Positions 11,891-44,710 of a stretch of 47,806 nt of DNA are shown piece after piece. The notes under the pieces are model-generated. The model had not been told where the DNA came from. It saw nothing but the letters and a program-made list of their open reading frames with translations, and searched no databases. Location of the stretch: positions 1 through 47,806 of the forward strand of contig CDRNVI010000186.1 in the NCBI GenBank assembly GCA_977017575.1. Direction: 5' to 3'. Source of the stretch: Paramoeba atlantica. Taxonomy: Eukaryota > Protista > Discosea. Position numbers and translations under genes: made by a program. Numbering within the stretch: position 1 is the first letter of the stretch; every line of letters begins with the position of its first letter.

Positions 11891-12035
11891 CTATGAAAAC
11901 AAAAGAACAAAACAAATTTCACAACTCTTCAAGTTGCAATCTTTTAGAATCTTGTGGCTGGTTTGATATTTACTATATTCTATAAAAACTGTTAATAACA
12001 TTTCATAAAAAAGAAAAGAATTTAAAAAATCAAAC

Positions 12036-14488: not shown

Positions 14489-15766
14489 ATGAAAAACGTT
14501 CTTTTGGTTTTGGTTTTGTTTTTTTTCTTCTCTTTTGTCTTTGGTGATACAGACGATACAGACGCAAATTGTGGCTCAAAATGCAGAAGTGATCAAGATT
14601 GCCTTGACAATCCTTTCAATTATTGTACCTTTTGCAATGGAAGTGGTGTTTGTTCTCCCATGTGCGGGGTTGGTTGTCGACACGAATCAGATTGTAATAC
14701 AGGTTTTCGTTTTTTCTTTTTTCTTTTTCTTTTCTTTCTTGATCTTTGAACTCAATTGGAAAAGGTGGCCCTCAACCTTGTACTCAATGTGTGAACACAC
14801 AATGCGTCAATCCAAACCCTTTTTGTGGTGAATTTTGTGGTTATGGTGTTGATGCTGCTTGTCGGTTGGTTTTCTTTTTTTTTTTCTCTCCTTTTTCTTT
14901 TTGTACAATCTATCCATTTTGTGTGAGATTTGAGATTCTTTTATAAAATTGTAAAACCCTCTCTTTTTGAATCAATATCTCCACATTCGATCTGCTCATC
15001 TTTTTTCCCCCACATCACATCCACAAAGATACAACGGGACTGGACCTTGTGCAGGGTTCCAAAACCAATGTTGTATGTGTCACCCAACCGACTTAACAAA
15101 GGTTTTCATTTTATTTTGTCTCCTCTTCAAATAAACTTTCTCTTTTTCACTCATAATTTTCGATTTCTCATAATCAAGGGATGTGGCAATTGGACAAATT
15201 GTGACCAAAAATGTTCCACTGACAGCGACTGCAAAGAGTTTGATGGAAATTGCACTTTTTGTATCAGCGGAAAATGTCAGGTAAACTATTCTCTTTTTTT
15301 TTTTCATTTCTTTTTCTTTTCTCTCTTCTCTCTTTTTCATTTCAATTAATCTCAAATCAAAAGGAAAATAATGGTCCACAATGTGGGACAATTTGTGTGA
15401 ATTCAGGACAATGTGCTGCAAATCCAACTTGCTCACAATGCATTGGCAGTGTTTGTTCACCAGCTCAAAAATGCGGACAGAGTTGCATTAGTTCAGGTTC
15501 AAAATTTTTTCTTTTTTAATTCGTAGGTTGAAATGATATTTGAAGAATATTGTTCTCATCTTGTCCTCTCTTTTCTCTCCCAATTCTCCCCAGGACAATG
15601 TGAAGGATACAATCCTGGGACTTCATGTGTTGCTTGCATCGGCGCAGTTTGCCAAAATACACTCTCTTGTGGATCTCTTTGTGGTTCAAGTAGTCAATGT
15701 GATTCATCATGTCCAACATGTAACTTTGGAAAATGCCAAAAATCAGAAGAAGGGAGTTACAACTAA
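14489..15766 (+). CDS. Secreted cysteine-rich repeat protein (~7 six-Cys modules), 6 exons
   Basis: Signal peptide MKNVLLVLVLFFFFSFVFG; repeated C-x3-C-x5-C-x5..8-C-x2-C-x4..5-C modules (CGSKCRSDQDCLDNPFNYCTFCNGSGVC; CGTICVNSGQCAANPTCSQCIGSVC); TAA at 15764-66. Confidence 0.85.
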
Positions 15767-15952
15767 GATTCATTTTTGGTTTTTTTCGAAATAAAGATTT
15801 TTCTCTTCTTTTTTCTTGATCAGAAATTGTGATTCAAAAATATTTATTAATTTTCCTTGGAATTTGTGATGTGAAAAATTGACATTTTCCTACAATCACA
15901 ACTTCTCATCTTTGAGAACAAATATCGCAGGTCTGTTTTCAGTTTTAAAATA

Positions 15953-18776: not shown

Positions 18777-19043
18777 CTTATTCTTCTTTCTTTTTCTTTT
18801 CCTTTTTTTTTCTTGTTTTTTTTCTTTCTTTTTTTCTTTCGAGTGTTTTTCTCCTTCCCACTCTCCTCAACCAATCGAGATTTGCACTTGAGTTTTCCAA
18901 AAAAAAAAAAAAAAGATAAAAAAAAGCAAAAAAACAACAAAAATGCGATTTTTTGGACCTTTGAAAAAACAATCTCCTCCCCGCTCTTTTTCCGCTCAAA
19001 AAATAAACTATTTTTCATTTCATTTTATTGATTTAGTCAATTT

Positions 19044-19635
19044 TTACAATTGACCAGACTTGGCAATGACACAAGCTTGCTTGGGCTTGTCATTGGCACC
19101 AGTGGGAGTACCTTCGACCTTCTTAATAACGTCCAATCCTTCGACAACTTTACCGAAAACGACGTGCTTGCCATCCAACCAGGAGGTCTTGACGGTGCAG
19201 ATGAAAAATTGAGAGCTAAAAAAATAAACATTTTAATTGAGATTCTTTTCAAAAAAGGAAAAAAAAAAAAAAAAAGAAAGATTGAAACCCGTTGGTGTTA
19301 GGTCCAGCGTTGGCCATGGAGAGGATACCGGGGCCAGTGTGGATTTCACGGAAGTTCTCGTCAGCGAATTTCTCTCCATAGATGGATTCACCACCAGTTC
19401 CGTTTCCACGGGTGAAATCTCCACCTTGGATCATGAATTGGGGGATAACGCGGTGGAAAGCAGATCCTTGGTAGTGGAGAGGCTTGCCAGATCGGCCATT
19501 TCCCTTCTCTCCAGTGCAAAGGGCACGGAAGTTCTCAGCGGTCCTGGGGACAATGTCGCTGAAGAGTTCCATAACAACTCGTCCTTGAGGTTTACCTCCA
19601 ATGGTGATATCAAAGAAAACACGGGGTCTGGCCAT
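19044..19635 (-). CDS. cyp: Cyclophilin-type peptidyl-prolyl isomerase, cytosolic, divergent-loop type; 172 aa, 2 exons
   Basis: [73 protein letters not shown]; intron 19288-19216. Confidence 0.97.
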
Positions 19636-20018
19636 TTTGATTGAAAGTCTCTTTTTCCCAACAGAAAGAAAATCAAGACAAACTCAAATGAACCCAATTA
19701 TGGGTGAATGCCACGTCATTTTATTTTTTTTATTTTTATATCACATTTTTCTGTGAATAATTATTTTGTAGCAGTTTTTTGCTCTTTTTTCTTTATTTGT
19801 GTTTTTCGTTTTTTGTGTGTTTTTTTGAAGCGAGAAAAAGGTCTCTTTTGAAAAAGTGGGAAAGAAAATTCTTCTTTGTGAAGGACAACAACCCCAAAAG
19901 AAAAAAAAAACACAAACACAAACACAAACAAAAAAAACATCAAAAAACAGAAACAACCCTCTCTTCTCTTTTACTTCTTTTCAAAAAAAAGAAAGTTCAA
20001 AATAAGAAGTCTCCAAAA

Positions 20019-21780
20019 ATGAAAAGAGGAAAGATGGAGATGACAGAAGAAGACTCGTACGGTCAAACCATCCTGGACCCAACACAGGATGATGAATCGT
20101 TTGGTGCCATTTATTATGACCGTTCCCATTACACTTCCACCGAATGTACAACTTCTCCTCCTCCTTCTCGTGTTCATAATTCATCCAGAAATAGTGGTGG
20201 TTCATCTACTCCTTCTTCTTCTTCCACACCTGAATCGCATTGGGATAGGTTGGAGCGACAAAAGACGGCTCTTCTCTCCGATATTTCTTCTTCAAAGGTT
20301 TAAAATTATTTTATTATTTATTTTTTTTTTCAAAAAAAAAAAAAAAGAGAAAAAAAATGAATTCAAATTCCAGAATATTCAGGACAAAGCGACAACTGTG
20401 ATGTTCTCTGATGAACATCAGATTGGAGTCATTGAATATGACAATTATGAGGAACCAACTGAGAAACTCACATGTTCGACAATTCTTTGGATGATTCTCT
20501 GTCCTGCTTGTATAGGTAAACTTTCTTTCTTTTTTCCTCTGTTCCACAAAACACTCTCTTCTTCATTTTTCTCACCTTTTCTGAATTTGTTTTGGAACTA
20601 AAAACATTCAAAAAAAGGAAAAATTTTCAACCGATCCCAGATGAAAGAAATTTTGGAATCTCTGATTACTTTTTCAAGTTTTATCATTGCAATTCAGCTC
20701 CTTTTATTGATCATCATGTTGTCTCAAGATGGGATTGACAGTAGCTTTCCAATTTGGGGTCCTTCGAAAGATACATTGTTGGAATGGGGAGCTCTGAATG
20801 GCGATAAAGTGATGCATTGTGCTGAGCTTTATCGAATTTTTTCTGCTATGTGGATTAATGCTGGTATCTTATCTCAATTCTTGCTCATTTTTTTTACCAT
20901 ATTTTGTGTCTTTTGTGAGAAGAGAATATCTCTCGCCCATCCAGAAGTGTTTTTTTGATTTTTCTCATATGTATACATATCCCCTCTTTTTTAGGAGTGA
21001 CACAATTTATTTTAAATACATTTGCCATTCTTCGAGTTGGTTTGTTTGTTGAATACCGTTGGCGTTGGATGCGCTATGCTCTCATCTATATGATGTGTGG
21101 TGTAAGTATGGATCTTCCCATTTTGATTCTTCAAGATTGTATCTTTTTTCCATTTTTTTTTGACTCTTTCCCAACCTAATAGGTGGGGGATTGTTGTCAT
21201 TAATTCTTCAACCAAATACCGTCAGTGTAACTTCATCTACTGCAATGTGTGGAATTGTTTCTGCTTATTTGTGTGAGGTTTATTGTTACATTATGTCAAG
21301 GATTTCATTTGAAATATTGAGATTTTTCTCTCCTTTTTTGCAGGTGATATTTACGTGGTATAAAACTGAATGGCTTCAAAGACTTATTTCTTCCATCATT
21401 TGTATCCTCTTTATCAGTCTGGTATTGTTTTTTTTTTCCACACACACTTTTTCTTCCTTTCTCTCAAAATTCTTTTTTTTTCAAGACACTTTTACTTGGA
21501 TTGGTGGATCCTTATGTTGATGACAGTGGAACAGTTGGTGGTGCAGTCATGGGTCTTTTATTGGGTTGTTACTATTCCTTGATTGAATCAGATTTCAACC
21601 CCCAAATCAAGGTAAAAAAAAACTGGACTTTGAATTCAACTTTTAAGGATTATAAAAATAATATTCGTTTGACAGGTTCATCTCCCAAATACGATTTTGG
21701 TTGTTGTGACGAGTTACTATGTCGCAGGAATCACTGTTTTTTATGTTTTGACTCCAGTTCAAAAAAAGACAACTTGTTAG
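20019..21780 (+). CDS. Rhomboid-family protein, predicted catalytically inactive
   Basis: WGPSKDTLLEWGAL, YRIFSAMWINAG, LRVGLFVEYRWRWMRYALIY, PNTVSVTSSTAMCG and PYVDDSGTVGG align to the rhomboid L1 loop, TM2, TM4 and TM6; multi-exon with GT-AG introns. Confidence 0.8.
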
Positions 21781-25600: not shown

Positions 25601-28545
25601 CCTGGGAAAATTTTGCAATCTCATCGAGAATTGTCCGTCAAGCCAAGTCTCCTATTGGACGCTCCTGAAAGATCTACAAAAGGAGAAGTTTCTCAGGAAA
25701 ACAATCCAATCTTTTGTCCCTCGTTTCAAATGTCTTCTGTGATGTGTTGTGTTATTGAGTTGCAGAAATTAGAGGGATTTTCGAAAATGAGGAAGAAGAA
25801 ATGGAGTTCAGGCGAGCAATTTTATCTCTCTATTGTGTCTCAGTATGAATCAGATGCGGATCTTGTTCCTCCTGTCCATCAATCACAATATCGTTCGATT
25901 TCTTTTGAAAATGGATTAACTGATCTGACTTGTTCACTCCCTTTTCTATTTACTCCTTCTTGTCCCTCTATTCTCTTCTGCCTCTACAAAAAGGAAGAGG
26001 AGGGATTTGAGGAAGGTGATGAAATTATTGCCAGAGCTGTGTTTGATCCTCAAACAACATCAGTTGTCTCGAATAAGATGAATTCTGTCACAGTTGAATT
26101 GAGGAGAGGGTTGAAGTTAGTGTTTCAAATCTTTTATGGTGATTGGGGTCCTTCTTTTATTGTTGAAGATTTTCTAAATCCGGAGGAGGAAGACCCAATT
26201 CGGATGGAACAACTTACTCGTATGAGGCTGAATCGGTCAATTGTGAGGCACGGGAAAGAAAAAGAAGAAGAAGAGACGCTAAATGAAAAAAAGAAAGACA
26301 AAGCGAGAGGGAGTCGGATTATAAAGAAGAGAAAAGGTTTCTCAGATTCCGATCAGAGGAGAGACAGATCACTCACATGTGAGTCGTCCGGACCACTCCC
26401 TTCTCGGGGTGCTTCTGAAAAAGATCCTTCTTTCTCATCATCATCAACAAGTTCCCAAAATGGAAATAGGAAGAGTGACGGGGATCAACAACACCAACAG
26501 CTAGTTAATAGTGCAAGAAGAAGGAGGAGTGATCCTTTGATTGAACCAATCTTTGATCAAGCTCCAATGGATATGTTATCTTTAATGGGGGTGAATGGTC
26601 TTTGTATTGAAGATGGAAAAATTACGCATGGTTTTAACCAAGATCTGGTTTTTGCGCTACTTTTTCACCCGAATCCACTCCGTCGCTTCGGAGATATGAT
26701 TGTCTTTTTCGATTCTTTTTATTCTTTTTTGACTGTGGACGAAATTATTGAGAGACTTCAGGAAGTGTTGAAATTGTGGGAAGTTCATGGAGTGAAGAAG
26801 GAAAATGTTGTGAGAAAAGATGGTGAATATGTCATTGAGCTGGGGAAATATTTCTACTCCAACTTAGGAGAATTTTGTCAAATGTGGTTGGAAAGGTTTT
26901 CAGAGGATAACGATGCTGAAGGTGTAAATAAGCTTGTTTCTTTTGTTCAGGACCATCTTTTGGAAAGAAGTCGTTTCATCCCATCTGGAACAGTCAGTCA
27001 AATTAAAGTCCTTCTCAAATCGGTGAATATCCCACTCCAAAGAGCGAATTTAAAATCGTCGGTAGAGCCTGCTGAAGATCTCTCTCTCCTTGAATTTGAT
27101 CCAACTTCGTTTGCGGAGGAAGTGACGATATATCTCCATTCTCATATGCAGAAAGTTGAACCGAAGGAAGTTTTTGGGCTTGCATGGACAAAAACGGATG
27201 CTGATATTCGGGCCCCTCATTTAACTAAAATGATTAATTTTTTTAATAAGTGTTCTAGGTTTTTATTTTGGTTTTATATACTCATTTTATAACTCTCTCC
27301 CTCCCTCCTTTCTTTTTTCTTTTTCTTTTTCTTTCTTAATTTTTTCTTTCTCTTTTCACAGATGGGCTGTTCATGGAATTCTGAGTGGCGAATCTCCCGT
27401 TGAAAGAGCTGCGAGAATCGAGCATGTTATCACAATCCTCACAACATTTCTCAGTTTAAACAATTTACATGGAGCCTTAATGATTTATACAGCATTGATT
27501 CACTCTTCGATTGACCGGTTCCTCTTTTTTTCTTTTCACTTTTCTCTTTTTCTTTAATATCTCAAGATCACTTTTTCGTTTTCTTTTTTTTATCTTCAGA
27601 TTAAAATCTTCTTGGGCAATGGTTGCTCCCGCCAAAATGGAAGAACATAAAGTTGCTGCGAATTTATTTGATAGTTCAATGAATTGGAAAAATTATCGAG
27701 AAACATTGAGTGACCTTTTCCCACCTGCTGTGCCTTATGTAGGACTTTGCCTTCAAGATTTGACTTTTGTTGAAGAAGGAAATCAAGATTGGGTCGGGGA
27801 TGCAGAGGAAAAAATTGTGAATTTTTACAAGAAGCGTCTCTGGTCTGATGTGGTCCAAACATTGAAAAAATTTCAATCTATTTCTTATCGCCTCGAGGGA
27901 ACAACGTTATCTGCTCATTGTGTGTTGATGTCACGAAGTCTCTCTGATGCAGAATGTTACGAATTATCGTTAAAAGCTGAGCCAAGAGCAAGTTCTTCTT
28001 CAGCTTCTCAAAAATCAGAAAAATCAGGTACTGATACCCTCTCTCGATTGGCTCTCTCTCCAAGGCAAAGAATCAGATCTGGGACTAGTTCACTCCGAGG
28101 ACTCAGTTCTGCAAGGAAACGGCCAAAGACGCCTGTCTTTCCCACCACACAGAGCCAACAACCTGACCAAAAAGAGAAAGATAAGAGATCGATACTTTGT
28201 TCTTCATCTCCTCATGTTGCTGATTTTGATAACGCGAGTTTTAAGGATTTGAAGACACTTTGTGAGAAAGATCAGAATGAGAAGAAGGCTCAGATTATTG
28301 GTGGAAAATTTCCAATCTTTGAGCGAGCGGAAGTCAAGGAACTTTTCGTCGAACTTGAAGAGGATAAAGAAACTCGATTGCGAATATCTTCTGCTCGGGA
28401 TAACAGGCAACCCCAAGAAAAAAAGGAGAAAAACAAGTATGAGAGTCCCAGAGAGTCTTCAAGAGTGTATATGCGTTCTCCACCTGGCTTGTTTGCCCCA
28501 CAACCCTATCTTCAATTGGATGACGGAAGTTCAGGGGGGAAATGA
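22670..28545 (+). CDS. RCC1-repeat plus RasGEF (REM and CDC25) protein with KE-rich N-terminus and a possible C2-like domain
   Basis: RCC1 blades (VSCGHRHTLAVASDGTVYSWGKNENGQLG; ATGGNHLVFLTSCGRVFVSGSNSSGQLG). CDC25 motifs LLEFDPTSFAEEVT, LNNLHGALMIYTAL, PPAVPYVGLCLQDLTFVEEGN, IVNFYK. TGA at 28543-45. Confidence 0.93.
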
Positions 28546-28678
28546 ACCAAAACAAAAAAAAATGTACAAAAAAAAACAAAAGCAAAAATCAAAACACAAA
28601 ATTTGAAAAAGTTTTCCTCCCAATTTTTTGCCTCAATATTTATTTTCTTTTTTTTCATAAAATTTTGGAAAATTTTCC

Positions 28679-31600
28679 TCATCGAAAACCCCGATCATCA
28701 CTCTTCATTGACCTCCGACTCTCAAAACCAACAAGATTAAGGGGGTCATACATCCCAAGACTTGAGGTCATCCTCTTTCTTGAAATACAAAAATTATCGA
28801 GCCTGAAAAAAAACAAAAAAAAAGGTTGAGACTTTTTTTTTAAAAAAATAAAAAGTTCTTTCACAAAAGAAAAACCTTGTAATCCAAAGATCTCTGTCTT
28901 CCTCAGTGACAGCATTCAAATAAAAAGTCCTCTCAGGTGTCGAAACAGTGAAAGCAAGAGGATGTTTCTCTAAAATTCGAGGATTTTGGCAAATTTGAAC
29001 TGTTGAGCCAGGCAAAGAAATTTGTCCTTTGAGAACCAATGCTTCATTTGTGTCATAATACAGAAGGAATCTTTTGTAGAGCACGAACCATCGTTTTTGC
29101 CAGTTCCTCCTTCAAAATAAAACTTTAGTTTTGCAAAGGAAAAAAAAATGAAAAAATAAAAGGGGAAAAAAATGGGCGAAACCGGGAATCGAACCCGGGC
29201 CTCTCGCACCCTAAGCGAGAATTTTACCACTTAACTATTTCGCCATTTGACAAAAGTTTTGCGTTTTGGTTGGATGACATTCATTTTTATCATTATCAAT
29301 GAGAAGGAAACAAAAAGAAACCTATTTTCTCCTTTCTTGAATAAAAATCCAGATAAACTTGGTTCTTGTTGTCCTGTCAACTCATTTTGAAGTTTGAACC
29401 ATTTTGTGATTTTCCCATTTTCACCACTTGGGTTTGACATTTGCGAACAGAGATGGTTGATCTAAGGATGAAGAGTGAGATGGGATTTTTTTGAAATCTT
29501 GTTGACTGAAGAAGAGAAAAAACCTCTTGGTGTGTTGGGTTCTTTGTCCCTTCGTAATATTTTTTTAATGTTCGAAGATCGTCCAATGTTAATTTCTTAC
29601 TCTTCGAGGCGGATCCACAAGTTGACAAGACCTGGAAGTTTTTTTTAAAAAAAATTGAAATTTTTTCAAGGTAGAGAAAGGAAGGGTAAAAACCTTCAAC
29701 CAATCCGAAGCTTCCTTAGCAGTTGCAGCACTAAGATAATTTTCCGCTCTCTTTTCTGGAAACACACAAATACAATTTGTCTTTCCAAAAACTTTTTCGT
29801 CACTGGATGGAGAATTGAATGAGATTTCTTCTTCAATTTTCTCTTTTCTTTCTCTTACCTCAGATGAAATTCAGTGCCGTTGGTCCGGATTCGAGTTTTT
29901 AATACAATTTTGGTTTCATCCAAGAATCCAAAGAGATGCCCCCCTTTTGAAAAGAAGTAAGAAAAATACAGGGAAAAGAAGAGGTGAGTCTGGGGGTAAA
30001 GGAAAAGGAAAAAAGAATTAACCTTGAGCAACAAAATAAATTGTTTCCCATTTACTTTCACTTGCAGACCAAATCATCAGTGGACCTTCTTTCAAGACTG
30101 GACCTAAAAGAAGAAGAATTAGAATTTTTAAAAAATGAAAGAGAGGGGGGACAAAAAAATTACCAATCAGGGGAACTTCAGAGGTTTTTCTTTGGTATGG
30201 TTTTGGACTTTTCTTCTTCCTGTAGAAAAAAAATGAAAAATTATCACCAAAACAAAGAAAAAACAAAACAAACCTTCGTTCAACAGCTCCCTGATTACTT
30301 CTTTGCCTCTTAAAAGAAATAGGGGGCTCGGCCCCTGCGCCAGTACCAGCTGTAACAGCAGCAACAGTTGTTTTCATCTTACTAAAAACTCTCTCTGGAG
30401 GAGGGGGGACACTCCCACTCTGTGTATGGGTAACACTAAAATTTCTTGCAATACCAATCCCACTGTTCCCCAATTTCCCACCACCCGGACTTCTTTCTCG
30501 TGGACTATTACCTCCTCCAAATTCACGAATTCGGGAACAACTAATTTCACTACCGCCACTGCCGCCACTGCTACTGCTACTGCCACTGCCGCCACTGCCT
30601 CCACTGCCGCCACTGCCACCACTGCTGCCACTGCTATTGCTACTGCTACTGCTACTACTACTGTTGCTACTCACTCCACTACCACCACCATCTTGGCCTT
30701 CAATTAATGGACCTTTTCTAACCCCAGGGAAAGCTTCTCCTCTTCTGCCTAAGACAGGTTGATCTTCTCCAGGTTTCAGTCTGCGAGCTGGGCGAACTTT
30801 TTTGATCTCAGAGGAAGTCTTGAGATCAACAGATTCGACCCCACCACTTATCTTCTCACTTGAAGGAAGAAACTTCAAATACTCTCCCATTATCCCCTTA
30901 TTTTCCGTGACAATTTTCAAACATGTCATATTCTTTTTGTTCGCTAATTTCCAATCTACGCCATGTGAACAAAGATGTTCAATAATTTTCTCATTTTCGA
31001 ACTTGCCACGAGTGAGGTCCCGATAAAGAACTTCATGGAGAGGAGTATTGCCTTCATTATTTTGAATATTAGGGTTTGCTTTTCGTAACAAGAGCCAAAT
31101 CGCCAGTTTTGTTTGTCCCGCTTTAATACAATAATGGAGAGGAGTATTTTCTAATTTACATGTTGCATTAAAATTCGCTCCTGCCTCTTCCATTTCTTTT
31201 AACAAATCAAACAATGGCTGTTTTGTAACAATTGAACAGCTCGATCGATTTCGACACAACAAGTGAAGAGGAGTCAACAAATCCTCTTTTCCCTTCCTCT
31301 TCGCATCTTTCGGCGATTTTTTCAGCAAACTTCGGCAAATTTGATACATATCTTTCGAAGCGGTGTCACAGGCACAGTGGAGTGGTGTCCACCCATCAGA
31401 TGGTCGAGGTGCAGGAGAATATTTGAGAAGAAAAAGAGGGAGATATTTAAACTTTTGGGATTCTACGATAAGGTGGAGGGGTGTGGTTTTCAGAACTTCG
31501 ACACATGATTTTTGGATTGTTTCGGGGCTAATTGACTCCATGTATGCATTGATGACCTAAATAAAAAAAGAATGAAATAAATTAATTGGTTTTTTTGAAT

Positions 31601-34600
31601 TATTAGTAAAATTTCAAAAATTTAACCTGTTTTGAATAACCTTCACCAACAGCCTTTTGTAAAACAAGAGCAGGAGGGTCAGTCTCCGCCAACAATTTAT
31701 CCACAATTTTTTGGGCAGTTTCACTTGATTCTCCTACAGCCTCTCTCTCTTTCTCGTCTTGAGATAGAGTTGACCTTATTTTAATTCCAACAATTTGCCA
31801 TTTACTTGGTGATGAGGGTGGCAATTTCTATTTTGAGGTTTCATAAATGAGAAGGGAATTGAGAAAAAAAAAGAGAAAGAAAAGAAAAAGGAACCTCAGA
31901 TCGTTCAGGAAGGTCAGAGCGATCGATGCCAGGTAAATCAAAAATAAATGGACGAGGTTTTACTTCACTTTTAATTCGCATCATTACCACCCACTATTTA
32001 TCATAATGGTGAGAGAAAGTTCTTTCCCTATTCTCTCTCTTTTCTTTGCAAGAACAATTCTTTTTTTACTCAAAATCAATCAAATAATTACTACCTTTTC
32101 ACTTTCTTCATCGATTAATGAACTCAATTGTAACTCATCCCACAATTTCGCTCCACTCATCTTCGTAACATCTTCCTTCTTCAGTTGATTTTCCCCAATT
32201 TCTCTCTTTAAAAGACCGATCACATCAACTAAACTTTGTTGATAATTCATAGAAAAAGCTGTTCTTCTCAGGGCATAGTGGAAGGGAGTGGAATCTGAAG
32301 AGAAGAGGAAAGAATTCAGAAAGAATTCAAAATTCAAAAATGAAATAAAAAAACAAGAAAAATGAAAACAACAATAAAATAAACAAAACAAAAAACAGAA
32401 ACAAAAACAAAAACAAAAATAAAAACCTGTCAAAATAGTCACAACATCAGCATTCACCCCCCAAGCCAACAACTGTTCAATCGCAGTAACATTTCTATAT
32501 CTCGCCGCAAAATGTAAAGCTGTTTCTCCATATGCATTCATTCCATTAATATCGAGTCCTCTCTCTTTCATTTTTGCCATGATTGTTGTCAGTATTTCTT
32601 TTTCGTCTTTCTTGGTTGGGATGTGACAGACCAGAAACATGAGGGCTGTTGTTCCGTCAGAGAGGGAGAGCAATACATCGACCCTTTTTGGTGAGGTTAA
32701 TATTGTGAGAAAGGAAAGCTTCTTTTTTTGGTTGGAAAGGTTGAAATAAAAAAACAAAAACAAAGAATAAATATCACACAAAAAAACTGACACAAATCAT
32801 GATTCTCTCTCTCAAAAAAAAAATTAAAAACAAACTTGGAATTCATAACAAGATAATAAACAATATCAGTCCGCCCCAACATACAAGCAAAAAGTAATGG
32901 TGTCCAATTCCCATCTTGATGATTTAAGACCTCAGATTTCAATGCCTCTTGACACAAAGTAATTGCCTATTTTAGATTTTTTTAATATTTATTTGGATAT
33001 TTTGGTTCTTTTTTTTAGTTTTTTATCACAATTAAACAATTTTTATTTCGAATTTAAAAGAAAAGAAAATTTCTACCTGACTTGAACCAAACTCAATCAC
33101 CGTCAGAAAATCACTATCATGCATAGAACTCGTAGCCGCACTCAATTTTGCCATGTCATCATCAAGAAGGATTTCAATCAAATGATTTGGGTCTGTAGTT
33201 TTGTTAGGGCCAGAAGAAAAATAGAAAAGAAGTGAAAAAAAAAAGGTGAAAAAAAAAGAAAAAAATTACTCTTTGTTGCAACTGTCTCTGCAAATCTTGT
33301 CCTTTGTAATTTTCCTTCTTGGTCAACAAATCTGGTTTAAAATTTTCGAGGTGAAAAAAGAGAGAATTGAGGGGAAAGAAAAAAAGGAGATAAAAAAAAA
33401 GAAATATCCAATCAAAGAAGAAAAAAAACAACTAACATAATAAAAAAACAAAAACAAAAAACAAAAAAGAAAAAAACCTGGCAGTCTTCAACCTCAACCC
33501 CCTCAAACAACCCAAAAGCTTCCCCTCAAAATGAATCCCATTATAAACACAAAAATGAAACATAAAAGAGAAAATAAAAGAGATCCAATCTTCCAAAAAG
33601 AGTTCCATTGCGTGAGTGGTGTGACGAAAGTGGAGATGTCCAATCACTCTTAAAAGACGTTTGAATATCATTTCGATTGTTGGGTTTGGATCATCTGGAT
33701 TTAGAGAAAGAGAAGGAAGAAGTGATGTGAGAAAGTGTCTTTATGATTTCAGAGTAAAGTTGAGAGAAAAGAAAGAAAGAGAGAGAAAAAGAAAGAAATA
33801 GAAAAGAGGGAAGAGAAAAAGAACCAGAAGATTCTCGATTTGAAAGAGATTTTTCTAATTTTTCCATTAACTCTTGAACCCATCCTGATAAACAAGAAAC
33901 CCATGTTGCTGCATTTACTTGCACACTCCTGTTTTTAATTTTTTTTAAATTTTATTCTGGTTCTCTTTCTTCTTCAATCTCCCTCTCGAGAAATAGACAA
34001 AAGAAAAAATATTTTTTTAAAAAAACCTCACAATTTCGTTTGCTTCCCACGCAAATTTCATTGTCGGAGAAATATCCATTGCAGGGCAGTGACAAACAGG
34101 AGCAAAAAGAGAATATCTAGAGAAAAAAGAAAACATTAAACAAAAAAAAATAATAAAAAAACTAAAAATAAATTAAAAATAAATAAAAATGAAAACAAAA
34201 AAAAAACAAAAAAAAAAAACAAAAACAAACATCCTCATAGTAAGATTCCCAGCAATCAGAACACCAGCAATCTTCCACAACAAATCATCCTCCCCAACAG
34301 GAGCAATCGCAGCTTCTCTCATCATTTTCACACCAGTCGAAACCCCCTCCAACATTTGACAAATATAAGAAGAAGGTGGCGCTACCTTTGTTAATAGAGT
34401 TGAAGGACATTTGAATGACGCCACGTGGAATTCTGTTCCCTTTTTTTGGAAGAGTTAGAGGGAAAAATAGAAAAGAAAAGAGAGAATGAGAGAGGGGAGA
34501 GGGCACAATTTAAACCAGCAGATAAGGGGGAACAAAGAAAAATCAAAGAAAATGAAAGAGAAGAAAAACCTCTTCTAAGAGTTCTCGTAATTTTTGATAA

Positions 34601-37600
34601 CTCTGAGGTCGATACAAACTTTCTCTCATTTCTTGTATTTTTTCAGATCTTTTGATAACAATTGGTTCTTTTTTCTGAAAAAATGAAAACTTCAATAAAT
34701 AATTTGAAAAAAAAAAATTGTAAATTATAAAATTTAAAAAAAATCAGGTTTGGTGTTAACCTTTTGCGTTGAAGCACTCAAATTGATCGAAGCTCTTGAC
34801 GGATTACTTATTTTCAACAACTATTTGTTTTATTTTAGAAAAGAGAGAGGAAGAGAAAAGAAGAGAGGAGAGAGAAAAAGAAGGGAAGAGAACCGTTTTT
34901 AACAAATTAGAGCGAATATAAACCAAAATATGATTGGGAGTCAAAGTCTCTAAAACATGATAAGGATGTTCATCTGGATTAAGCGCTCTCCCTATTCAAA
35001 CAAAATTGAAAAGAAATAAAATAGAAAATAAGAACAAAAGAAAAATCAAACAATATTAAAGAAAAAAGAAATAATTCAGAATGAAGAAAAAAAAAAAAGG
35101 ACAAAAAAGCAACCCGTTGCAGAGAAAATCATAGTATCAGTCCATTTTGTTTTTTTAGCCAAACCTGTTTTGTCAACAACAAAGATACAAAACTCTTCTT
35201 TGTACACTTGTGGGGCTAACTGAAAGAAATAGATATGAAAAACTCTTTATTTCAATACAAAAAAAAAGAAAAAAAAAGAAAAACATTTATTAATTTAAAT
35301 TAAATAAATAAATAAATAAATAAATAAAAGCAAAAGAATGTAACCTCACTCCCACCCTTCTTCGCAGACTTAGTCAACTCACGAACAATAACATCAACCA
35401 ACTGATCAGTTCGGCTGGCTTTTGGAGCACCAATAGTTTTAAAAGTTGTATCAGCTGAATAGATTCTGAATACTCCATTTGATGTACTTTCTGTGTTCAG
35501 TGCCTGTTTTTTTTTTTGTTTTTTTTTGGTTATTTTTCTTCTTTGTGGGTTTGGAGAAAAGAATCAAAAAAGAAAAGAGGGGGATATTTCTCGGATCTCT
35601 TATTGTTTTCTTTCTTTTTTTGAAATGAATTTTTGATATTAAAATGAATGATTGGAAGAAAGAATTTTGAAGGTACCTGAGATGTAGCATACATCATTGA
35701 ATGCATTGATTGTTTCTTCAAATTTGTACCAAGCTGTCCTAAATCGACCAAACGAGCAATTAATTTCCTCCCTTGATCAGCTCTACCAAATTTTACCAAA
35801 AAGTTTCCATACTCCTACAAAGAGAAATGAGAAGAAGAAAAAGGAAAGAAAGAAAGGAAGGCTAGAGAGAGGAGATAAAAACGAAAATAAAGTACCCGCA
35901 GAGCAGGGCTATAATCAGGATCAAGTTCCAAACAACGAATAAAATATTCTTCAGCTCTTTCAAATCTTCCACATCTCACCAAAAAGAGCGCATATGAACA
36001 AAGAGCAAAGACATTTTCCTGGAAAACGAAGAGAGAAAAAGAGAAAGGAAGGGGAAAAAGAAGAAGATTATTTTTAGAGCAGAGATATTAAATTTCTCAT
36101 TTTCTTTTCTCATTTACTTTTTTGAATTGACGAAAAGTAATTTCTCTTTTTACCAAAAGAAAGAAAAGAAACAAAAAGAAAGAAAAGAAACAAATAAAAA
36201 AGAAAAGAAACAAATAAAAAAGAAAACCTGATCAATCATCAAAGCTCGACTAAACAACTCATCAGTCTTAACCACAAACAAATCTCTCCTCGAAAGATAA
36301 ACATCATCCATATTTGGTTCCTTATTCCCTTCTTCTTCCAATTTTGATCTCAAATCAGAGACAAGATAATGGTAATAAGTTAATGCGCAATTTAAGAGTC
36401 CTTGTACATCGTTTGGACTTGAACTTAACGCTTCTGTTTTTTGTTTTTTAAGTTGATGTTGTGAATGAAATAAAACAGTTTATGAGTTTTTTTTTAATAT
36501 AATTTGAGTAAACAAAAAATAAAATGAAAAAAATGAAAAAAAAAAAAAAAAACAACCAATAAATCAAAAACTCAAAAACTCAAAAACTCAAAAAAACCTT
36601 CAAATCGCTCAATCGCCTGAGCAAGCAGCGCAACCTTATACCCACTCTGCCGCATATGAACAGCCTGATATTGAAAAAAAAACCCCTCCGCATTCGCCAC
36701 AACATTTGTATGTTTCACTCTCTCTCCAATCTCAACAATATCCAATAATTCGACAGGGCTATCAGGATTCCATTCAGCGCTCCCCATAAATCGGCTCATA
36801 GCGTGGGGAGTGAAGCGGAGTCCCATCATTTTTGTTAGGCGATCTACAATCATTCCTCTGTTTTTTGTTGGGGAGAGAGAGAGAAGAAAGAGATAAGAGA
36901 GAGGGAGAGAGAAGAGAGGGGAGAAAAAGGGAGAATAAAAGAATAAAAGAGAAAGAGAGAGAAAACCTCCAACTAATAGAAGACTCAGAGTGGACACGTG
37001 ACATTTCTAATACTTCTGATGCGGAAAATGGACTTGTTGGGTATTTCGAAAATGAAAGTTCCGTGAAATTGAAGAAGAGAGATAATTTTTCTGAATGTTT
37101 TGATCAGGAAATTTTGTGTAGACAAAAGAAAAGAAAGAAAGAAAGAAGAAAAAAAACCATTAAATTTTGACCAATATTCTTTTGATTTTGGACCATTTCC
37201 AAAACAAACATTAAAATAATCAACAACAACACTTCGATATGGCACTTCAAGTGGGACCTAATAATTTAAAAAAGATGAATGAGATTATTAACTTTAAAAA
37301 AAATAATTGAAAAATAAATACAAAATAACAAAAACAAAAAAAAAACAAAAAAAAAACAAAAAAAAAGAAAAAGAAAAAACCTTCAACTCTTTCATCTTCT
37401 CTCTCAAAAGCTGCCTCAACTCCTTCTTCATCACCCTCGCCACAGCCTCCATCAACAAAAACTGAACAACAATAAAATATTTTGGATCTTTTTCAACAAA
37501 TTCGATAACTTTTCCCAAATATCTCATATTAACACTTTCTTTATGCATTAGTTCTGTCAATTGAAGATTTTGCAATTTTGCCTTTTGGAAGAGAGAAAGA

Positions 37601-39683
37601 GAAGAGAAAAAATGTGAGAATTTTTTGTTTGGTGTTAATTTGTTGAATTTGATTTGTTGAATTAAATTCTCTTTCAAATTGCCCCAATTTTCGTCACAAA
37701 ATAGACAAAAAAAACCTGTCCTTGAGCTTCCAATGTACTCTCTCCAATTCTCCGAGCAGCTTTTTTAATAACAACAGTTTCCAAATAATCTGTTGCTTCT
37801 CGAATATCTCGATTGTGTTCAGAATAAAATAAATCATGAATAATAAATCCTGTTGAAGAGATTATTTTTTGTTTGTTGAATAAAAAAGAAACAATTACAA
37901 ATTTTGGTTCAAAAAGGAATCATTTTTTTAAACCAATTGTTTTTAAATTAATTATTTGATAAAAGAGAAATGAATTAATCAAAAAAAAAAAAAGAACCAG
38001 AATAAGAATCACTACAAAGCGGAATTTTATATTGCTCCACAAATTCTTTTCGAAACATTCGATACAAATGACCATTATAATGTAATTTGTTGGGCTGTTT
38101 GCAAAAGAAAGAAAGAGAAAGAAGAGAAAGAAAAAAGAAAAAAAGAAAAGTAAAAAAAATGAGTTGAAAAATAGAAAAGAAAGAGAAAAAGAAAAAGGGA
38201 AAGAAAAACAAAACCTGAACAGGGGGTAAAGTTCGACTAAAATCCAATAAATAGAATTTATCATCCAATCCAAGATGTCCTTCTACATCACAAGCCGCCC
38301 ATAATGTCTGTTTATTATTATTATTTTTTGATTTAGAAGAGGTGATAAAATGAGAGGGAGAGAAGAGAGAAAGAAGAGAGAAGGGAGAGAAAAAGAAAGG
38401 GAGAGAGAAAAGAGAAAAGAGAGAAAAGAAAGAGAGAGACAAAAGAAAGAGAGAGAGACAAAAGAAAAAGAGACAAAAGAAAGAGAGAGAGACAAAAGAA
38501 AGAGAGAAAGAGAGAAAGAGAGAAAAAGAATAAAAACCTTCGTTTTATTTCTTCGAACACCACAGCGATGAGGTTTAAGATTTAATGTTTTTCCAGCAAT
38601 TTTCATTAAACGATTAAATTCTCTATTACTCTTTTTCACTGTGATTCCCGCATCTTTACTTCCGTACACCTTTTTTGAAGTATGTTATTTTATTGTTATT
38701 TCTTTTTTGTTGTTGTTGTTTGAGATTTAATTAAATTGATTCGGATTTAATTTTAAAAAGAAAAAAGACAAACACAGCATCAACCACAAAAAAATCCAAT
38801 CAAACAATTTAACAACAACAAAAAAATTAAAAAAAAAAAAAAACAAACCAAACTCTTTCCACTTACAGGAAGAACAGAAATGGCAATCAAACGAAACCCA
38901 CGATAATCAACCAAAGCCATAATCGGAACTCGAAGTTCCGTCATTTCTAAAAGAATAAAAAAATAATATATTAATATTAATATATTTAATAAGAGAATAA
39001 AGAATGAAATAAATAAGAAATAATAATGGATGAATTTGGTATTTTTGTCCCAAAAAAGAAATAAAAAAATAATAAATCTTTTTTGTTTTTCTTCTTTCCT
39101 CTCTCTCTCTCTCTTTCCTCTTTCTCTCTTCTCCCAAACCTAAAGAAAAATAAGCTTTCAGCCCCTTAAGCTCATGTCCAGCAACTTTAGAAGCAGCATA
39201 ATCACTCCCATGAAATAAACCATGTGAATCTACTGCAAATTTGAAAAGAATATTGTTTGCAATGTATTTATCTCCACCTGAGAGAAAGAGAGAGAGAGAG
39301 AAGAGGGGGGAGTTTGGAAAAAGAGAGAAGAGAAAGAGAAAGAAGAAAAAAGGGAATAAATTAGATAAATAAACAAATATCATTTTTAAAAAGAAAGAAA
39401 GAAAAGAATGAAAGAAAAGAAAGAAAGAAAAAAAAAAGAAAAGAAAAACAAACCAGCTTGTCCACCAAGACAAATAGGTTTCACAGTCTTTTTCGAAGCT
39501 TTCAAATAAACTTCAGAAATAATAATTTTTCCGTACGTTTTTGCACAATAAATAAAATCTTGAGACAAATGAAGAAGTTCCAAATTTGCATTCATTAAAG
39601 TTTCAAGAGGGACAGAGCTATTTGAAAAAAAAAGAATTAAAAAAGAAAGAAAACAACAAACCATTCAATAATAAGAATAAATA

Positions 39684-39716
<33 letters not shown>

Positions 39717-41499
39717 AAATAAATAAATAAATAATAATAAAAGTTAAAAAAAAAAAATAAAAAACCGATCTCCCGAAGCAGAATTCAATTTCTCAATCGA
39801 ATCCTGAAAACGAGTATTCCAATCTTCATCAACTTCATCTTCAATTAAATCATCTTCTTTTTCTTCTCCTTGTTCTGGCCGAGTACTAATTCTTGGAGAA
39901 GTAGCGGGAGGGAGAGAAAGAGGAGAGGGAGAAAGAGAAGAGGAGGTTTGTGAAGGAGATATCATTGGAGAGTAGGAAGTATAAGAAGGAGAAAGAGAAG
40001 GAACAGAAAGAGGAGAAGAAGAAGAAGAAGAAAGAGAATCCAATTCATTCTCATCATCATACAAAAGACCATAAGCTTCAACAACAGGTCTCTTTTTCGC
40101 CATTTTTGGAGGAGAAAAAGACCCAAAAAGTTCCTCTTCCTCTTCCTCCTTCTGGACCATCTCTTTCTCTCTTCTTCCTCCCCCTCCTCCTCCCCCTCCT
40201 TCCTCTTCTTTCCCAAACAAAGAAACATTATATCCAGGAGGAGGCAATTTGACATCACGAGTCTCTCCCCCTCTGTTCATAGTCAAAAATCGGGATTGCT
40301 GTGGCGAATTGTCACGTGGATTTTTCGGTGGAGACCAAGTAGGAGAGGGAGAAAGAGATCGATTACACCCAATTCTTGAACCACCTGTTTTTCTTGTTCG
40401 AGGAGATCGACCTGAAAATCGACTTGCTTTACCCTCTTCGAATTTGTGTTCTTCTTCTTCTTCTTCTTCTTCACTGTCTCCTCCAAAGATATTTCCATAT
40501 GCCTCTGTTGCTCCTCGAGAAGGGAGAGAACTTAAGTCAAGTTCACTGAATTTAGAACTGGGTGAATCTCCCGATTCCTGAAAAAGAAAAGAAAATTGAA
40601 GATTAACCTTCAAGAAAACCAACAACAAAACAAAACAACAAAACAAAACAACAAAACAAAACAACAAAGTGAACACGAGAGAACAAAAACAAAAAAACAC
40701 ACAAAACCTCATCATCATCACTCTCCTCCTCATCTTCTTCCTCCTCTTCCTCTTCCTCATCATCCTCATCCGAATCATCATCATCGTCATCATCGTCATC
40801 ATCATCATCTTCTTCTTCTTCTCCATCAGTCAAAACAGTCTTTCTTCTTAATCTCAATCTTCCAATGTCATGTAATTCTGGTTGTTCTCGAAATCGTGAA
40901 ACAATTGCCTCAATCCTCGGATTGTAGTGTTCGGCAAGTGCAGGAGTGATTGTGTAAGTCATTTTTTCTGGGACTTTGTTTCTTGGAGAAATAGAACTGG
41001 AACTCCTGTTTTTGGTTTTTTTTTTTGAGAAGAATAATACTTTCAGAAAAGAGAAAAAGGAAAAAAGAAAAAAGAAAAAAAGAAAAAAGAAAAAAGAAAA
41101 GAAAAACAAAACTCATCAAGGTTTGTTTCCTCGATCTTCTTCAATCTCTTAATCTCTTTTGATCTTTGAATCTTCGATTGAAAAGTGGTGCTCTTTTTGT
41201 TCAAAGATTCCAAATTGTCATGTAACTTTCGAATATTTTTGAGTTTGCCATAGTTTGATGTGATTTCTGCTTCGATTTGGTTTGCTCTTTGTAATACATT
41301 TTGTAATTCTGCCAGCTGTTTTTTTTGTTTTATTATTATTATTATTCTTATTTTTGATTTTTATACCCTTTTCCAAAAGAAAGAAAGAAAGAAAGACCTT
41401 CAGATTCAACTGTTCATTTAATTGCTCATCCAATTCGACATATTCTTTCGCTTTGGAGAGCTGGCGAGCGGACATTGCGAATCTCTTTGTATGATCCAT
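28679..41499 (-). CDS. Very large multidomain protein (~43 exons, roughly 2,600 aa): coiled coil - acidic - CLU - TPR - RA-like - MOB - ankyrin repeats - Ser/Gly-rich - PH - PH
   Basis: CLU motifs GGQAGGDKYI, ILFKFAVD, KVAGHELKGL, DVEGHLGLDDKFYLLDFSRTLPP; TPR (ALFLVRCGRFERAEEYFIRCLELDP); MOB (CHCPAMD...WVQE...IFKRLLRVIGHLHFRH); ANK (WTPLLFAC, GETALHFA, NTPLHYC); PH (KKGENRRNWQKRWFVL). Frame stayed open at the GT-AG junctions checked by hand (most of them, including all from the CLU-central region to the stop). The start codon may lie further upstream. Confidence 0.8.
29166..29172 (-). terminator. RNA polymerase III oligo-T terminator of tRNA-Pro
   Basis: T7 run one base after the discriminator on the minus strand. 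Confidence 0.7.
29174..29244 (-). tRNA. trnP: tRNA-Pro (AGG), located inside an intron
   Basis: GGCGAAA/TTTCGCC acceptor stem; anticodon arm CTCGC-TTAGGGT-GCGAG; T-arm CCGGG-TTCGATT-CCCGG; A box TAGTTAAGTGG; B box GGTTCGATTCC. Confidence 0.96.
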
Positions 41500-42166: not shown

Positions 42167-44710
42167 ATGGTGCGATTCACGCTCGAACAAGTCAAAGGAA
42201 AGATGGAAGAGAGGGAGAATATCCGAAACATCAGTGTTATTGCCCATGTTGATCATGGGAAATCAACTCTGACTGATACTCTGATTTCAAAAGCTGGGAT
42301 GATTGCTGAGGACAAATCGGGGAAGTGTTTTACTGATTTTGACAAGGAAGAACAAGCTCGAGGAATTACAATCAAGTCTACGGGTGTTTCCTTGTATTAT
42401 GAACTCCCACCAATCGATCCTGGCCCGGCTGCTGCTGCGGCTGTTGATCCGTTTGCTGGACAAGGTTATTTGGTGAACTTGATTGATTCTCCTGGCCATG
42501 TTGATTTCGCTTCAGAAGTCACCGCTGCTCTCCGTGTGACTGATGGTGCCCTTGTCGTGGTTGATTGTGTAGAGGGTGTTCGTGTCCAAACGGAAGCTGT
42601 GTTGCGTCAAGCTCTTGCTGAGCGAGTCAAACCCGTCTTGATGGTGAATAAGATGGATCGGATCTTTCTTGAATTGCACTCTGATCCCGAAGATTGTTAC
42701 CAAAAGTTCAACAGGGTGATCGAAAGTGTAAATGTAATTATCGCAACTTACTGTGATGAGAAGCTTGGTGATGTGAGGGTTGATCCATCGAAGGGAACCA
42801 TTGCTTTTGGTTCTGGTCTCCATGGTTGGGGGTTTACCCTGACCAAGTTTGCTTCCTTGTATGGCAAGAAATTTGGTGTGAAAAAGAAACTTTTGATGAA
42901 AACACTTTGGGGGGAAAATTATTTTGACCCAGAAGCCAAGAAGTGGGTAACTGATCCAATCAGTCAAAAGAGCGGAAAGAAGCTCAATCGCGCTTGGTGC
43001 CAGTATGTTTTTAAACCGCTCCGCCAACTCATCTCTTTCATTATGGCTGATAAAGTACCCAAATATCAAAAAATGATTGCCGAACTCAACATCAAGCTCA
43101 CCAAAGAAGAACAATTGCTTGTTCGGAAGGATCTGGTGAAAATTGTGATGAGGAAGTTCCTTCCTGCTGGTGATGCTCTTCTTGAGATGATCGTCTATCA
43201 CCTTCCTTCTCCTGTCACTGCTCAAAAATACCGTGTAGAGAACCTTTATACTGGCGATCTAGATGATGAAGCAGCTAAAGCGATCCGTGATTGTGATCCA
43301 AATGGGCCTTTGATGATGTATATCTCAAAGATGGTACCGACTGCTGACTTTAGCCGTTTCTATGCTTTTGGTCGTGTCTTTTCTGGGCGAATTAAAACAG
43401 GTCAAAAAGTTCGAATTATGGGTCCCAACTACGAAAAGGGAAGTAAGACAGACCTTTATGTCCAGCAGCCTGTTCAACAAGTTGTTTTGATGATGGGGCG
43501 CTCTGTTGAGACTATTTCTGACTGTCCTTGTGGGAATACAGTTGCGCTTGTAGGTGTCGACCAATGTCTTTTAAAAGGAGGAACGATTACAACAGACGAC
43601 AGCGCTTCTGTAATTCGGATCATGAAATTCTCTGTTTCTCCAGTTGTGAGAGTTGCTGTTGAGCCAAAAAAGCCTGGTGATTTGCCTGCTCTCGTTGAAG
43701 GTTTGAAACGTCTTACCAAATATGATCCTTGTCTTCAGTGTTATGTGTCCTCCTCTGGTGAACATATTATTGCTGGAGCTGGTGAGCTGCACTTGGAGAT
43801 TTGCTTGAAGGATTTGAAGGATAAGTTTGCCAAAGTTGAATTCCGGAAGAGCGATCCTGTCGTCTCTTACTGTGAGACTGTCTCGCAGCAGTCTAGGACT
43901 TGTCTGGCAAAATCAACCAATAAGCTCAACCGAGTTTTCTTCTCTGCTGAACCTCTTGGTGACGAACTAACCGCTGATATTGAAATTGGGAAAGTGTCTG
44001 ATGTTACTGACTCCAAAGAGAGAGCCCGTTATTTAGTTGATACCTACCAGTGGAATGTCCATGATTCGCGAAAGGTGTGGTGTTTTGGTCCTGTTTCCAA
44101 TGAACCAAGCAATGTTTTGGTTGATTGTACCAGAGCTGTCCAGTATTTGAATGAAGTAAAATCCTCTATCGTTGCTGGTTTTCATTGGGTCACTCGGGAG
44201 GGTGTTCTTTGTGAAGAAACCATGCGAGGAGTTCGTTTCAATGTGATGGATGCTCTCATTCACTCTGATTCGGCTCATCGAGGTGGCGGTCAAATTTCCC
44301 CTGCTGTTCGTCGCGCACTTTTTGCTTCTACTCTAACTGCACAACCTCGTCTTCAAGAACCTGTCTATCTTGTTGAGATTCAGTGCCCAACAGAAGCTCG
44401 TGGAGCGATCCACAGTGTTTTAAATCGGCGTCGTGGTCATGTCATTGCAGAAGATCCTAGGATAGGGACCCCACTGTACTCAGTCAAGGCATTCTTGCCT
44501 GTGAAGGAGTCCTTTGGTTTTGCTGCTGATCTACTTTCTCATACTTCAGGGAAAGCAATTCCTCAGTGTACTTTTGATCATTGGCAAGAGATGGGTGGTG
44601 ATCCTTTAGACTCGATGTCTTTCGCGGGTTCTGTTCTTAAATCTGTTCGAAAGAGGAAAGGACTTCCTCTTGCTGTTTCTCCTCTTGAAACTTATTTAGA
44701 CAAGTTGTAA
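42167..44710 (+). CDS. eEF2: Translation elongation factor 2, divergent and intronless; 847 aa
   Basis: [90 protein letters not shown]; continuous ORF from ATG 42167. Confidence 0.97.

Follow-up and report, generated by a model that had tools for sequence, protein, structure and literature searches.

Descriptions of the MOB family present its members as small, stand-alone kinase adaptors, and CLU proteins are described as a self-contained family. Does a locus of the protist Paramoeba atlantica nevertheless encode both in a single chain, or do several neighboring genes merely look like one there? We analyzed a window of 47,806 nucleotides (contig CDRNVI010000186.1, assembly GCA_977017575.1), in which the initial annotation had placed a single giant open reading frame fusing CLU, TPR, RA-like, MOB, ankyrin and tandem PH domains. 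Judged from the sequence, positions 41499-28679 are probably one protein-coding gene that joins CLU, MOB, ankyrin and PH domains, with the joins between them predicted.

Gene model and a second copy of the locus

We predicted the exon structure with our own splice-aware dynamic-programming model and fixed the gene ends by comparison with a second copy of the locus (L001). The splice model is permissive and tends to bridge short gaps. The predicted gene (28679..41499, minus strand, as are all features described below) has 43 exons and a coding sequence of 7,857 nt for 2,618 amino acids. It spans ~12.8 kb, from an ATG at 41499-41497 to a stop codon at 28681-28679, and its introns are 54-230 nt long with GT-AG borders and the donor G|GTTT, in the AT-rich, intron-rich genome of a poorly sampled protist. 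The final translation of the spliced frame contains no internal stops. The start (41499) and stop (28679) given in the initial annotation coincide exactly with those of the splice model, and the junctions that it named (33078/33929 and 34440/35503) agree with the modeled exon ends 33077, 33928, 34439 and 35503. The continuity claimed for the giant frame holds once the gene is spliced, whereas the genomic frame is interrupted by 42 introns. Our first model had ended at 42256 and 27878; these extensions were dropped because the extra exons had no counterpart in L001 and overlapped neighboring genes.

The window is telomere-proximal and its genes alternate strands. A convergent RasGEF gene ends ~130 nt from the stop of the fusion gene. 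An exact look-up of the neighboring EF2 protein for existing annotation returned no record.

The second copy (ENA ERZ24900291, ctg3971l) carries CLU, Mob1 and ankyrin matches in the same order and on the same strand as in the window, and our model of it is a single gene with 41 exons, encoding 2,664 amino acids. The two proteins are identical at 1,590 of 2,478 aligned residues (64%), and 24 introns share position and phase. Several lineage-specific introns fall within an uninterrupted exon of the other copy, including the intron 33478->33331 at the MOB C-terminus. Conservation between the copies separates exons (z = 11-22) from introns (z = 0-3), small linker exons excepted, and in nearly every exon differences are rarest at the second codon position, more frequent at the first and most frequent at the third. 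The assembly that contains L001 also contains a copy 99.1% identical to the window locus (L002). Because of this near-identical copy, L001 may be a paralogue rather than an independent species. A search of 1.8 billion representatives with the ankyrin exon found no full-length relative. The matches listed comprised the ORF of the locus itself, an ORF with 61% identity and generic ankyrin proteins, and none of the 150 listed shares the non-ankyrin parts with the model.

Domains along the predicted protein

Exons 1-2 (41113..41499, amino acids 1-102) contain the start codon and a probable coiled-coil N-terminus. Both copies begin with MD and have an ELDEQL motif in common, and exon-wise Pfam searches gave at most weak Sec20- and Spectrin-type matches. 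Translation of exons 3-4 (39766..41005, amino acids 102-472) gives an acidic, Ser/Pro-rich region of low complexity that closes with a DWNTRFQ motif, the opening of the CLU domain. In the window these two exons had no Pfam domain in the exon-wise search; their L001 equivalent matches CLU profile positions 1-56. The CLU domain itself (PF13236) lies in exons 5-10 (37998..39617, amino acids ~472-713), where five successive exons match the profile colinearly (positions 20-69, 60-108, 107-134, 148-198 and 184-221) with E-values of 7e-4 to 1e-9 and a top single-exon score of 39 bits. Across this domain, 219 of 238 residues are identical in L001. The CLU_N domain (PF15044) was not detected in the N-terminal exons of either copy at E <= 1 in the exon-wise search.

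Exons 11-15 (36598..37849) hold an eIF3_p135-type middle region (PF12807) and a conserved continuation. The match lies in exon 37581-37381 (43.5 bits, E 4.9e-11, cut-off 22) and covers only profile positions 9-72 of 171. The continuation includes exon 36857-36598, with 76 of 86 residues identical to L001; exon borders near 37158/37090 are uncertain, and the exon structure of L001 differs around 37158-36967. With five colinear CLU exons and the eIF3_p135 match, we retain the CLU call. In the TPR-like region that follows (exons 16-18, 35677..36433, amino acids 986-1141), exon 36018-35896 matches TPR_8, TPR_14, TPR_1 and TPR_2 just below their Pfam cut-offs (20-25 bits, E 1.5e-5 to 1e-4), and the adjoining exons gave no TPR match in Pfam. 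The segments compared with L001 are identical at 38 of 41 and 40 of 46 residues. The TPR assignment is thus that of a single exon.

Exons 19-21 (34894..35503, amino acids 1142-1262) encode a conserved module of ~120 amino acids, identical to L001 at 81 of 116 residues and with a coding-type substitution pattern. Its first exon contains no Met. This module had been called RA-like; its sequence is spread over three exons, none of which, searched singly, matched anything in Pfam (including RA, PF00788) or the PDB. A linker follows (exons 22-23, 34570..34820), of which exon 22 (34820-34761) is doubtful, with a nucleotide conservation of z = 1.7, and exon 23 (34674-34570) is conserved (z = 11.6).

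The next four exons (24-27, 33478..34439, amino acids ~1340-1524) encode a divergent Mob1/phocein domain (PF03637). Scored as single exons rather than as a joined domain, the profile matched exon 33694-33478 of the window with 25.2 bits (positions 107-156) and two exons of L001 with 27.0 bits (positions 41-103) and 28.0 bits (108-149), against a gathering cut-off of 27. Matches to PDB structures are colinear (MOB1A, E = 0.003; MOB1, E = 0.1-0.5). On these scores the domain is a MOB domain, as had been proposed, although a divergent one. The N-terminal exon of the domain gave no meaningful Pfam or PDB match, and a word-index search with it returned only the window's own genomic ORF. No relative emerged when metagenomes were scanned with the conserved MOB exon, and the ESM Atlas look-up of the MOB exon gave no usable match.

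We compared individual residues with MOB1A using the ranges of the PDB alignments. At K153, R154 and R157, which have roles in the phosphothreonine pocket (PMC4511216), the window reads K-R-x-x-R and L001 R-R-x-x-R, and the histidine pair at 161/166 (His-x4-His) is kept. Three ligands of the Cys2-His2 zinc site, the second Cys and the two His, align, the position of the first Cys is taken by Ser or Ala, and an additional Cys two residues ahead of the second gives C-x-C rather than C-x4-C. For the LATS/NDR-binding residues, E51 is kept in a GED motif and E55 is replaced by Leu (both from a by-eye alignment only), and the hydrophobic-site residues H164 and F167 are both replaced.

A second linker, from MOB to ankyrin, occupies exons 28-29 (33077..33331). 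The ankyrin repeats themselves (exons 30-35, first part; 30696..32966) cover ~500 amino acids. Here the ankyrin call is clear from Pfam: Ank_2, Ank, Ank_4 and related models match with E-values of 5e-23 to 1e-3, the lowest belonging to Ank_2 (81.8 bits; PF12796 and PF00023 were tested), and three more exons also match. The last part of exon 35, together with exon 36 (30164..30695), forms a Ser/Gly-rich linker of low complexity whose frame is open even unspliced, within a stop-free stretch at 31556-30021; the Ser/Gly tract is 3 amino acids shorter in P0001 and L002 than in the window. For the proposed tandem PH domains, the second is firm (PF00169, exons 41-42, 28876..29461; 54.9 bits, E 1.4e-14, 60 of 77 residues identical to L001). 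The first, in exons 37-39 (29694..30103, amino acids 2327-2417), is probable and recognizable by its pattern alone, with no HMM or PDB match at the exon level in either copy; it is identical to L001 at 56 of 89 residues, and L001 carries its first two exons fused. The terminal exon with the stop codon (28679..28802) has a matching segment in L001, which lacks an intron after the PH domain; the segment reads KTEDFVF in one copy and RLDNFCI in the other.

One gene or several

The closest competitor to a single gene would be two or three packed genes on the same strand (CLU, TPR and the ~120-aa module; MOB; ankyrin and PH), expressed separately or as a trans-spliced polycistron and merged both in the initial annotation and by our splice model. 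We regard this as quite unlikely. Separate genes need start codons, for which the window offers two candidates: exon 34674-34570 has a Met ahead of RESLY, and exon 33192-33077 has a single Met. In L001, an ATG right at the acceptor of exon 8446-8577, after the MOB tail, would permit a separate ankyrin-PH gene there. However, these candidates differ between the copies (the Met before RESLY is a Leu in L001), and the sequence upstream of them is conserved and of coding type; in the 12 codons preceding the Met of exon 33192-33077, differences from L001 at codon positions 1/2/3 are 0.83/0.08/0.83. Separate genes are disfavored because no conserved start codon belongs to either the MOB domain, which is embedded in the middle of the protein, or the ankyrin-PH part, and because the sequence 5' of the only candidate Mets evolves like coding sequence.

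The joins tell a similar story. Conservation is poor in the linker exons 34820-34761 and 33331-33270, as separate genes would allow, yet the acceptor and donor positions that flank the linkers are common to both copies, with phase 0 on either side. Moreover, the MOB exon of L001 runs uninterrupted past the MOB C-terminus into the RFVDQ segment; in the window, that segment can be joined only through the splice 33478->33331. This intronless join argues against MOB and ankyrin-PH being separate genes. The genome is compact enough to pack genes closely, given the convergent RasGEF end and, in L001, a nearest upstream ORF call that ends ~250 nt ahead of the ATG. Even so, the hypothetical genes would have spacers of 28-190 nt or would overlap, the tails obtained by reading through are T-rich, intron-like and devoid of conservation, and the alternation of gene strands is unlike that of polycistronic genomes. 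A fused architecture, as initially annotated, is therefore the reading favored by the 64%-identical copy with the same order, the shared introns and the lack of conserved internal starts.

We consider it highly improbable that the locus mostly yields shorter products (stand-alone MOB, ankyrin-PH) through internal promoters or alternative splicing, with the fusion as a minor isoform. Nothing bears on this directly in its favor; skipping of exon 34820-34761 would preserve the frame (phase 0/0 on either side) and internal Met codons could act as starts, but both copies show coding constraint on the linkers and on the sequence upstream of these Mets, which is unexpected if they are mostly untranslated. 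That the locus is a chimera of the assembly or a pseudogene in decay, as its telomere-proximal position might suggest, is hardly credible, as the same arrangement occurs in three independently assembled sequences (window, L002 and L001), the frame is intact through all 43 exons and the substitutions fit a pattern of purifying selection.

Relation to known families and possible function

Over its first ~1,140 amino acids the predicted single-gene product follows the order and spacing of the CLU/TIF31 family (Dictyostelium CluA, yeast Clu1, Drosophila Clueless, human CLUH and plant FRIENDLY), with PF13236, then PF12807 and then a TPR-like region. It differs in having a coiled-coil and acidic N-terminus instead of a detected CLU_N and in its single scoring TPR exon. 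Canonical members stop after the TPRs, at ~1,300 amino acids, whereas the fusion protein adds ~1,480 residues with MOB, ankyrin and PH domains. The MOB module matches positions 41-156 of the 170 of PF03637 colinearly over three or four exons, and its closest PDB matches are the MOB1-type co-activators (MOB1A/B and yeast Mob1). Human MOB1A and yeast Mob1 are of this type; MOB1 is a stand-alone adaptor of ~215 amino acids, while here the domain lies inside a predicted protein of 2,618 amino acids and its N-terminal helices are not recognizable by sequence. Ankyrin and PH domains are likewise combined in one membrane-directed protein in ArfGAPs of the ASAP, ACAP and centaurin types, but Pfam found no GAP or other catalytic domain in any exon of the fusion, its PH domains are C-terminal and its ankyrin block is much longer.

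Our literature search found no description of a CLU-MOB or multidomain MOB protein, and a keyword search in two MOB family surveys (PMC2684140, PMC7761452) gave no mention of fusions. A conserved gene in which CLU and MOB are joined to modules for binding membranes and proteins would represent a new domain architecture and would give a testable hint of a link between CLU function and MOB/NDR signaling. The weight of the fusion is limited because protists often show unusual combinations of domains, this organism lacks annotation and the joins are predicted.

One tentative mechanism, which we hold to be possible but doubtful, is that of a membrane-tethered MOB scaffold. From the N-terminus, the order is coiled-coil and acidic region, CLU core, ~120-aa module, MOB, ankyrins, Ser/Gly linker and two PH-type domains. 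The PH domains would tether the protein to phosphoinositide membranes and the ankyrin repeats would bind partner proteins. With its phosphothreonine-pocket basic residues and histidine pair kept, the MOB module might dock a phosphoprotein, such as a phosphorylated kinase of the Ste20/Hippo-like type, and perhaps also an NDR-type kinase, so that kinase signaling would be placed beside the CLU/TPR half. In other eukaryotes, CLU/TPR proteins act on mitochondrial distribution and mRNA. The initial annotation had proposed Ras input, Hippo/NDR coupling and RNA or mitochondrial control. Ras input is unsupported because it depends on the RA call, for which the searches gave no support; the other two are tentative, and the coupling depends on a divergent MOB domain.

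Because the predicted covalent link is kept in two diverged copies, the fusion might also be read as a "Rosetta stone", in which the mitochondrial and mRNA machinery of CLU and MOB-dependent NDR/Hippo-type signaling act in one pathway. We think this unlikely; if true, a non-covalent link between CLU and MOB may hold in other eukaryotes. Drosophila Clueless interacts with the PINK1/Parkin pathway. Links between NDR kinases and mitochondrial quality control by PINK1/Parkin have been described (PMC11129689).

A spliced gene model and its domains

The minus strand between 41.5 and 28.7 kb contains numerous short open stretches that translate into protein-like sequence, set apart by T-rich segments of 54-230 nt with G|GTTT-type donors and (C/T)AG ends. 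Because donors and acceptors bound these intron-type gaps, the frame is broken and there is no single literal ORF of the kind that the initial annotation had described; the finding is a spliced model. We built a small, splice-aware gene finder based on dynamic programming. Its codon log-odds were trained on the clear exons and the adjacent EF2 ORF, and its own predictions served to re-estimate the splice-site matrices. For the giant-gene region it predicted one continuous frame. Once extensions without support were trimmed off both ends, the model ran from an ATG at 41499 to a stop at 28679, exactly the limits first proposed, with 43 exons, 7,857 nt, 2,618 aa and zero internal stops.

The predicted exons (all minus strand) are 41499-41398, 41315-41113, 41005-40708, 40577-39766, 39617-39454 and 39277-39140 (exons 1-6); 38946-38849, 38669-38538, 38307-38215, 38094-37998, 37849-37716 and 37581-37381 (7-12); 37257-37158, 37090-36967, 36857-36598, 36433-36228, 36018-35896 and 35814-35677 (13-18); 35503-35345, 35219-35114, 34991-34894, 34820-34761, 34674-34570 and 34439-34231 (19-24); 34116-34027, 33928-33825, 33694-33478, 33331-33270, 33192-33077 and 32966-32836 (25-30); 32683-32427, 32294-32095, 31993-31895, 31827-31627, 31556-30274 and 30219-30164 (31-36); and 30103-30023, 29943-29859, 29802-29694, 29631-29524, 29461-29322, 29109-28876 and 28802-28679 (37-43). 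The model is least certain at the borders near 37158/37090 and in the small exons 34820-34761, 33331-33270 and 30219-30164. The stretch 36504-36544 is T-rich and intronic.

Domain searches were run exon by exon, with exons joined only for frame checks and for comparison with a second copy of the gene. Five consecutive exons matched CLU (PF13236) at profile positions 20-69, 60-108, 107-134, 148-198 and 184-221, and this colinearity validates the introns between them. Exon 37581-37381 matched eIF3_p135 (PF12807, 43.5 bits) and exon 33694-33478 matched Mob1_phocein (PF03637, 25.2 bits); ankyrin models scored up to 81.8 bits and the final PH domain 54.9 bits. No CLU_N was found in this search. The domain list of the initial annotation therefore holds for CLU, MOB, ankyrin and the last PH domain. 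Of its TPR region only exon 36018-35896 matched, to several models with scores slightly below the cut-offs, and the exons it called RA-like (35503-34894) and first PH (~30103-29694) had neither a Pfam nor a PDB match. One unbroken 512-codon stretch (31556-30021) contains both the ankyrin repeats and the beginning of the first PH-like domain, so their link requires no splicing.

A diverged second copy and the number of genes

Among 1.8 billion representative proteins, an ankyrin-exon query retrieved the locus's own ORF (P0001) and a second protein (P0002, 61% identical), and beyond these only generic ankyrin proteins. P0002 maps to contig ctg3971l of ENA ERZ24900291 (L001), where ORF calls matching CLU, Mob1 and Ank lie on a single strand in the same order as in the window. 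The gene finder, which split other genes within L001, predicted one gene there (1114-13018, 41 exons, 2,664 aa). The two models are identical at 1,590 of 2,478 aligned residues (64%). The contig carrying P0001 (ctg3824l, same assembly) is 99.1% identical to window 27035-34338, and the Ser/Gly tract of its ankyrin ORF P0001 is 3 residues shorter than that of the window, which makes it an allelic or strain variant. As this near-identical contig and L001 share one assembly, L001 is either a paralogue within one genome or an orthologue from another organism present in the sample. Its flanks (1-863 and 13036-20900) are not syntenic with the window: a GRIP-domain ORF lies upstream on the same strand, and EF2 and RasGEF are absent. 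Under either origin, L001 is a long-diverged gene copy and informative for comparison.

This comparison makes it quite probable that 41499-28679 is a single gene. The copies share 24 introns in position and phase; about 20 others occur in one copy only, a high turnover despite 64% protein identity. Opposite at least 11 of these single-copy introns, the other copy has an unbroken exon, well conserved on either side of the intron position, which proves the spliced frame at those places. For instance, L001 lacks the window intron 33478->33331 and runs straight from the MOB end (…LRLKTS) into RFVDQ…FAEA, a segment that the window reaches only through that splice. Nucleotide conservation is high in exons (z = 11-22) and low in introns (z = 0-3), and in nearly all exons differences are fewest at codon position 2 and most frequent at position 3.

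Several genes instead of one, with a stand-alone MOB or ankyrin-PH gene, is the less favoured reading. The genome is compact, exons 34820-34761 and 33331-33270 show no clear conservation, the former could be skipped in frame (phase 0 on both sides), and an L001 exon at 8446 has an ATG exactly at its acceptor. However, the two copies share no conserved start codon for either stand-alone gene. The first RA-like exon lacks a Met, and the one Met in exon 34674-34570 corresponds to Leu in L001; in the 15 codons ahead of it, differences are mostly at third positions (0.40/0.33/0.80 at positions 1/2/3). The 22 residues preceding the next Met (…CQMLEGV) are the same in both copies, and the 12 codons before the sole Met of exon 33192-33077 differ by 0.83/0.08/0.83, with position 2 nearly unchanged. 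If donors are disregarded, upstream proteins would finish in non-conserved tails rich in F, L and S, with only 28-190 nt, or a negative distance, to the next possible ATG. The shared introns, and the lineage-specific ones opposite unbroken exons, likewise support one spliced frame.

The MOB module, domain architecture and a possible role

Two L001 MOB exons reached the Pfam gathering score (27.0 bits, positions 41-103; 28.0 bits, 108-149), and the middle MOB exon matched MOB1A structures (E = 0.003). Residues were mapped within the PDB alignment range (query 7-47 on MOB1A 149-190). The window motif K-R-L-L-R, R-R-L-F-R in L001, maps to K153/R154/R157, the phosphothreonine pocket of MOB1A for phospho-MST (PMC4511216), and an H-x4-H maps to 161/166. 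The hydrophobic-site residues H164 and F167 are replaced; Ser or Ala occupies the first zinc Cys position, and an alternative Cys lies nearby. No tool aligned the N-terminal helices (LATS-binding E51, E55 region); by eye, E51 is kept in G-E-D and E55 is Leu. On this mapping, the module looks like a MOB1-type phospho-reader.

The novelty would lie in the domain architecture. Our literature search found no paper with the CLU, MOB, ankyrin and PH combination, and keyword searches of two MOB family surveys (PMC2684140, PMC7761452) returned no mention of fused MOB domains. Single-exon queries against a word index, metagenomes and the representative proteins found no full-length relative. With the domain identities as the established part, we infer a mechanism in which the PH domains would tether the protein to membrane, the ankyrin repeats would recruit partners, the MOB module would dock a phosphorylated kinase, and the CLU/TPR half would act as in CLU proteins. 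NDR kinases are tied to mitochondria and PINK1/Parkin quality control (PMC11129689), which makes a CLU-MOB link biologically conceivable.

Genomic setting

The window is eukaryotic and AT-rich in composition (G+C ~30-40%). It begins at a chromosome end, because positions 1-600 are a perfect (CCCTAAA)n array, that is, TTTAGGG-type telomere repeats; a strong C-over-G skew continues to ~2000. The EF2 gene (42167-44710, plus strand) is intronless, encodes 847 aa with every EF2 Pfam domain, and is divergent from the giant gene across an ATG-to-ATG gap of 667 nt. The gene-position collection has no record of this exact EF2 protein. At the other end, a plus-strand ORF (27511-28545) is convergent with the giant gene, and their stop codons are only ~130 nt apart; the final part of this ORF matches RasGEF (PF00617, 66.5 bits) over the C-terminal half of that domain.
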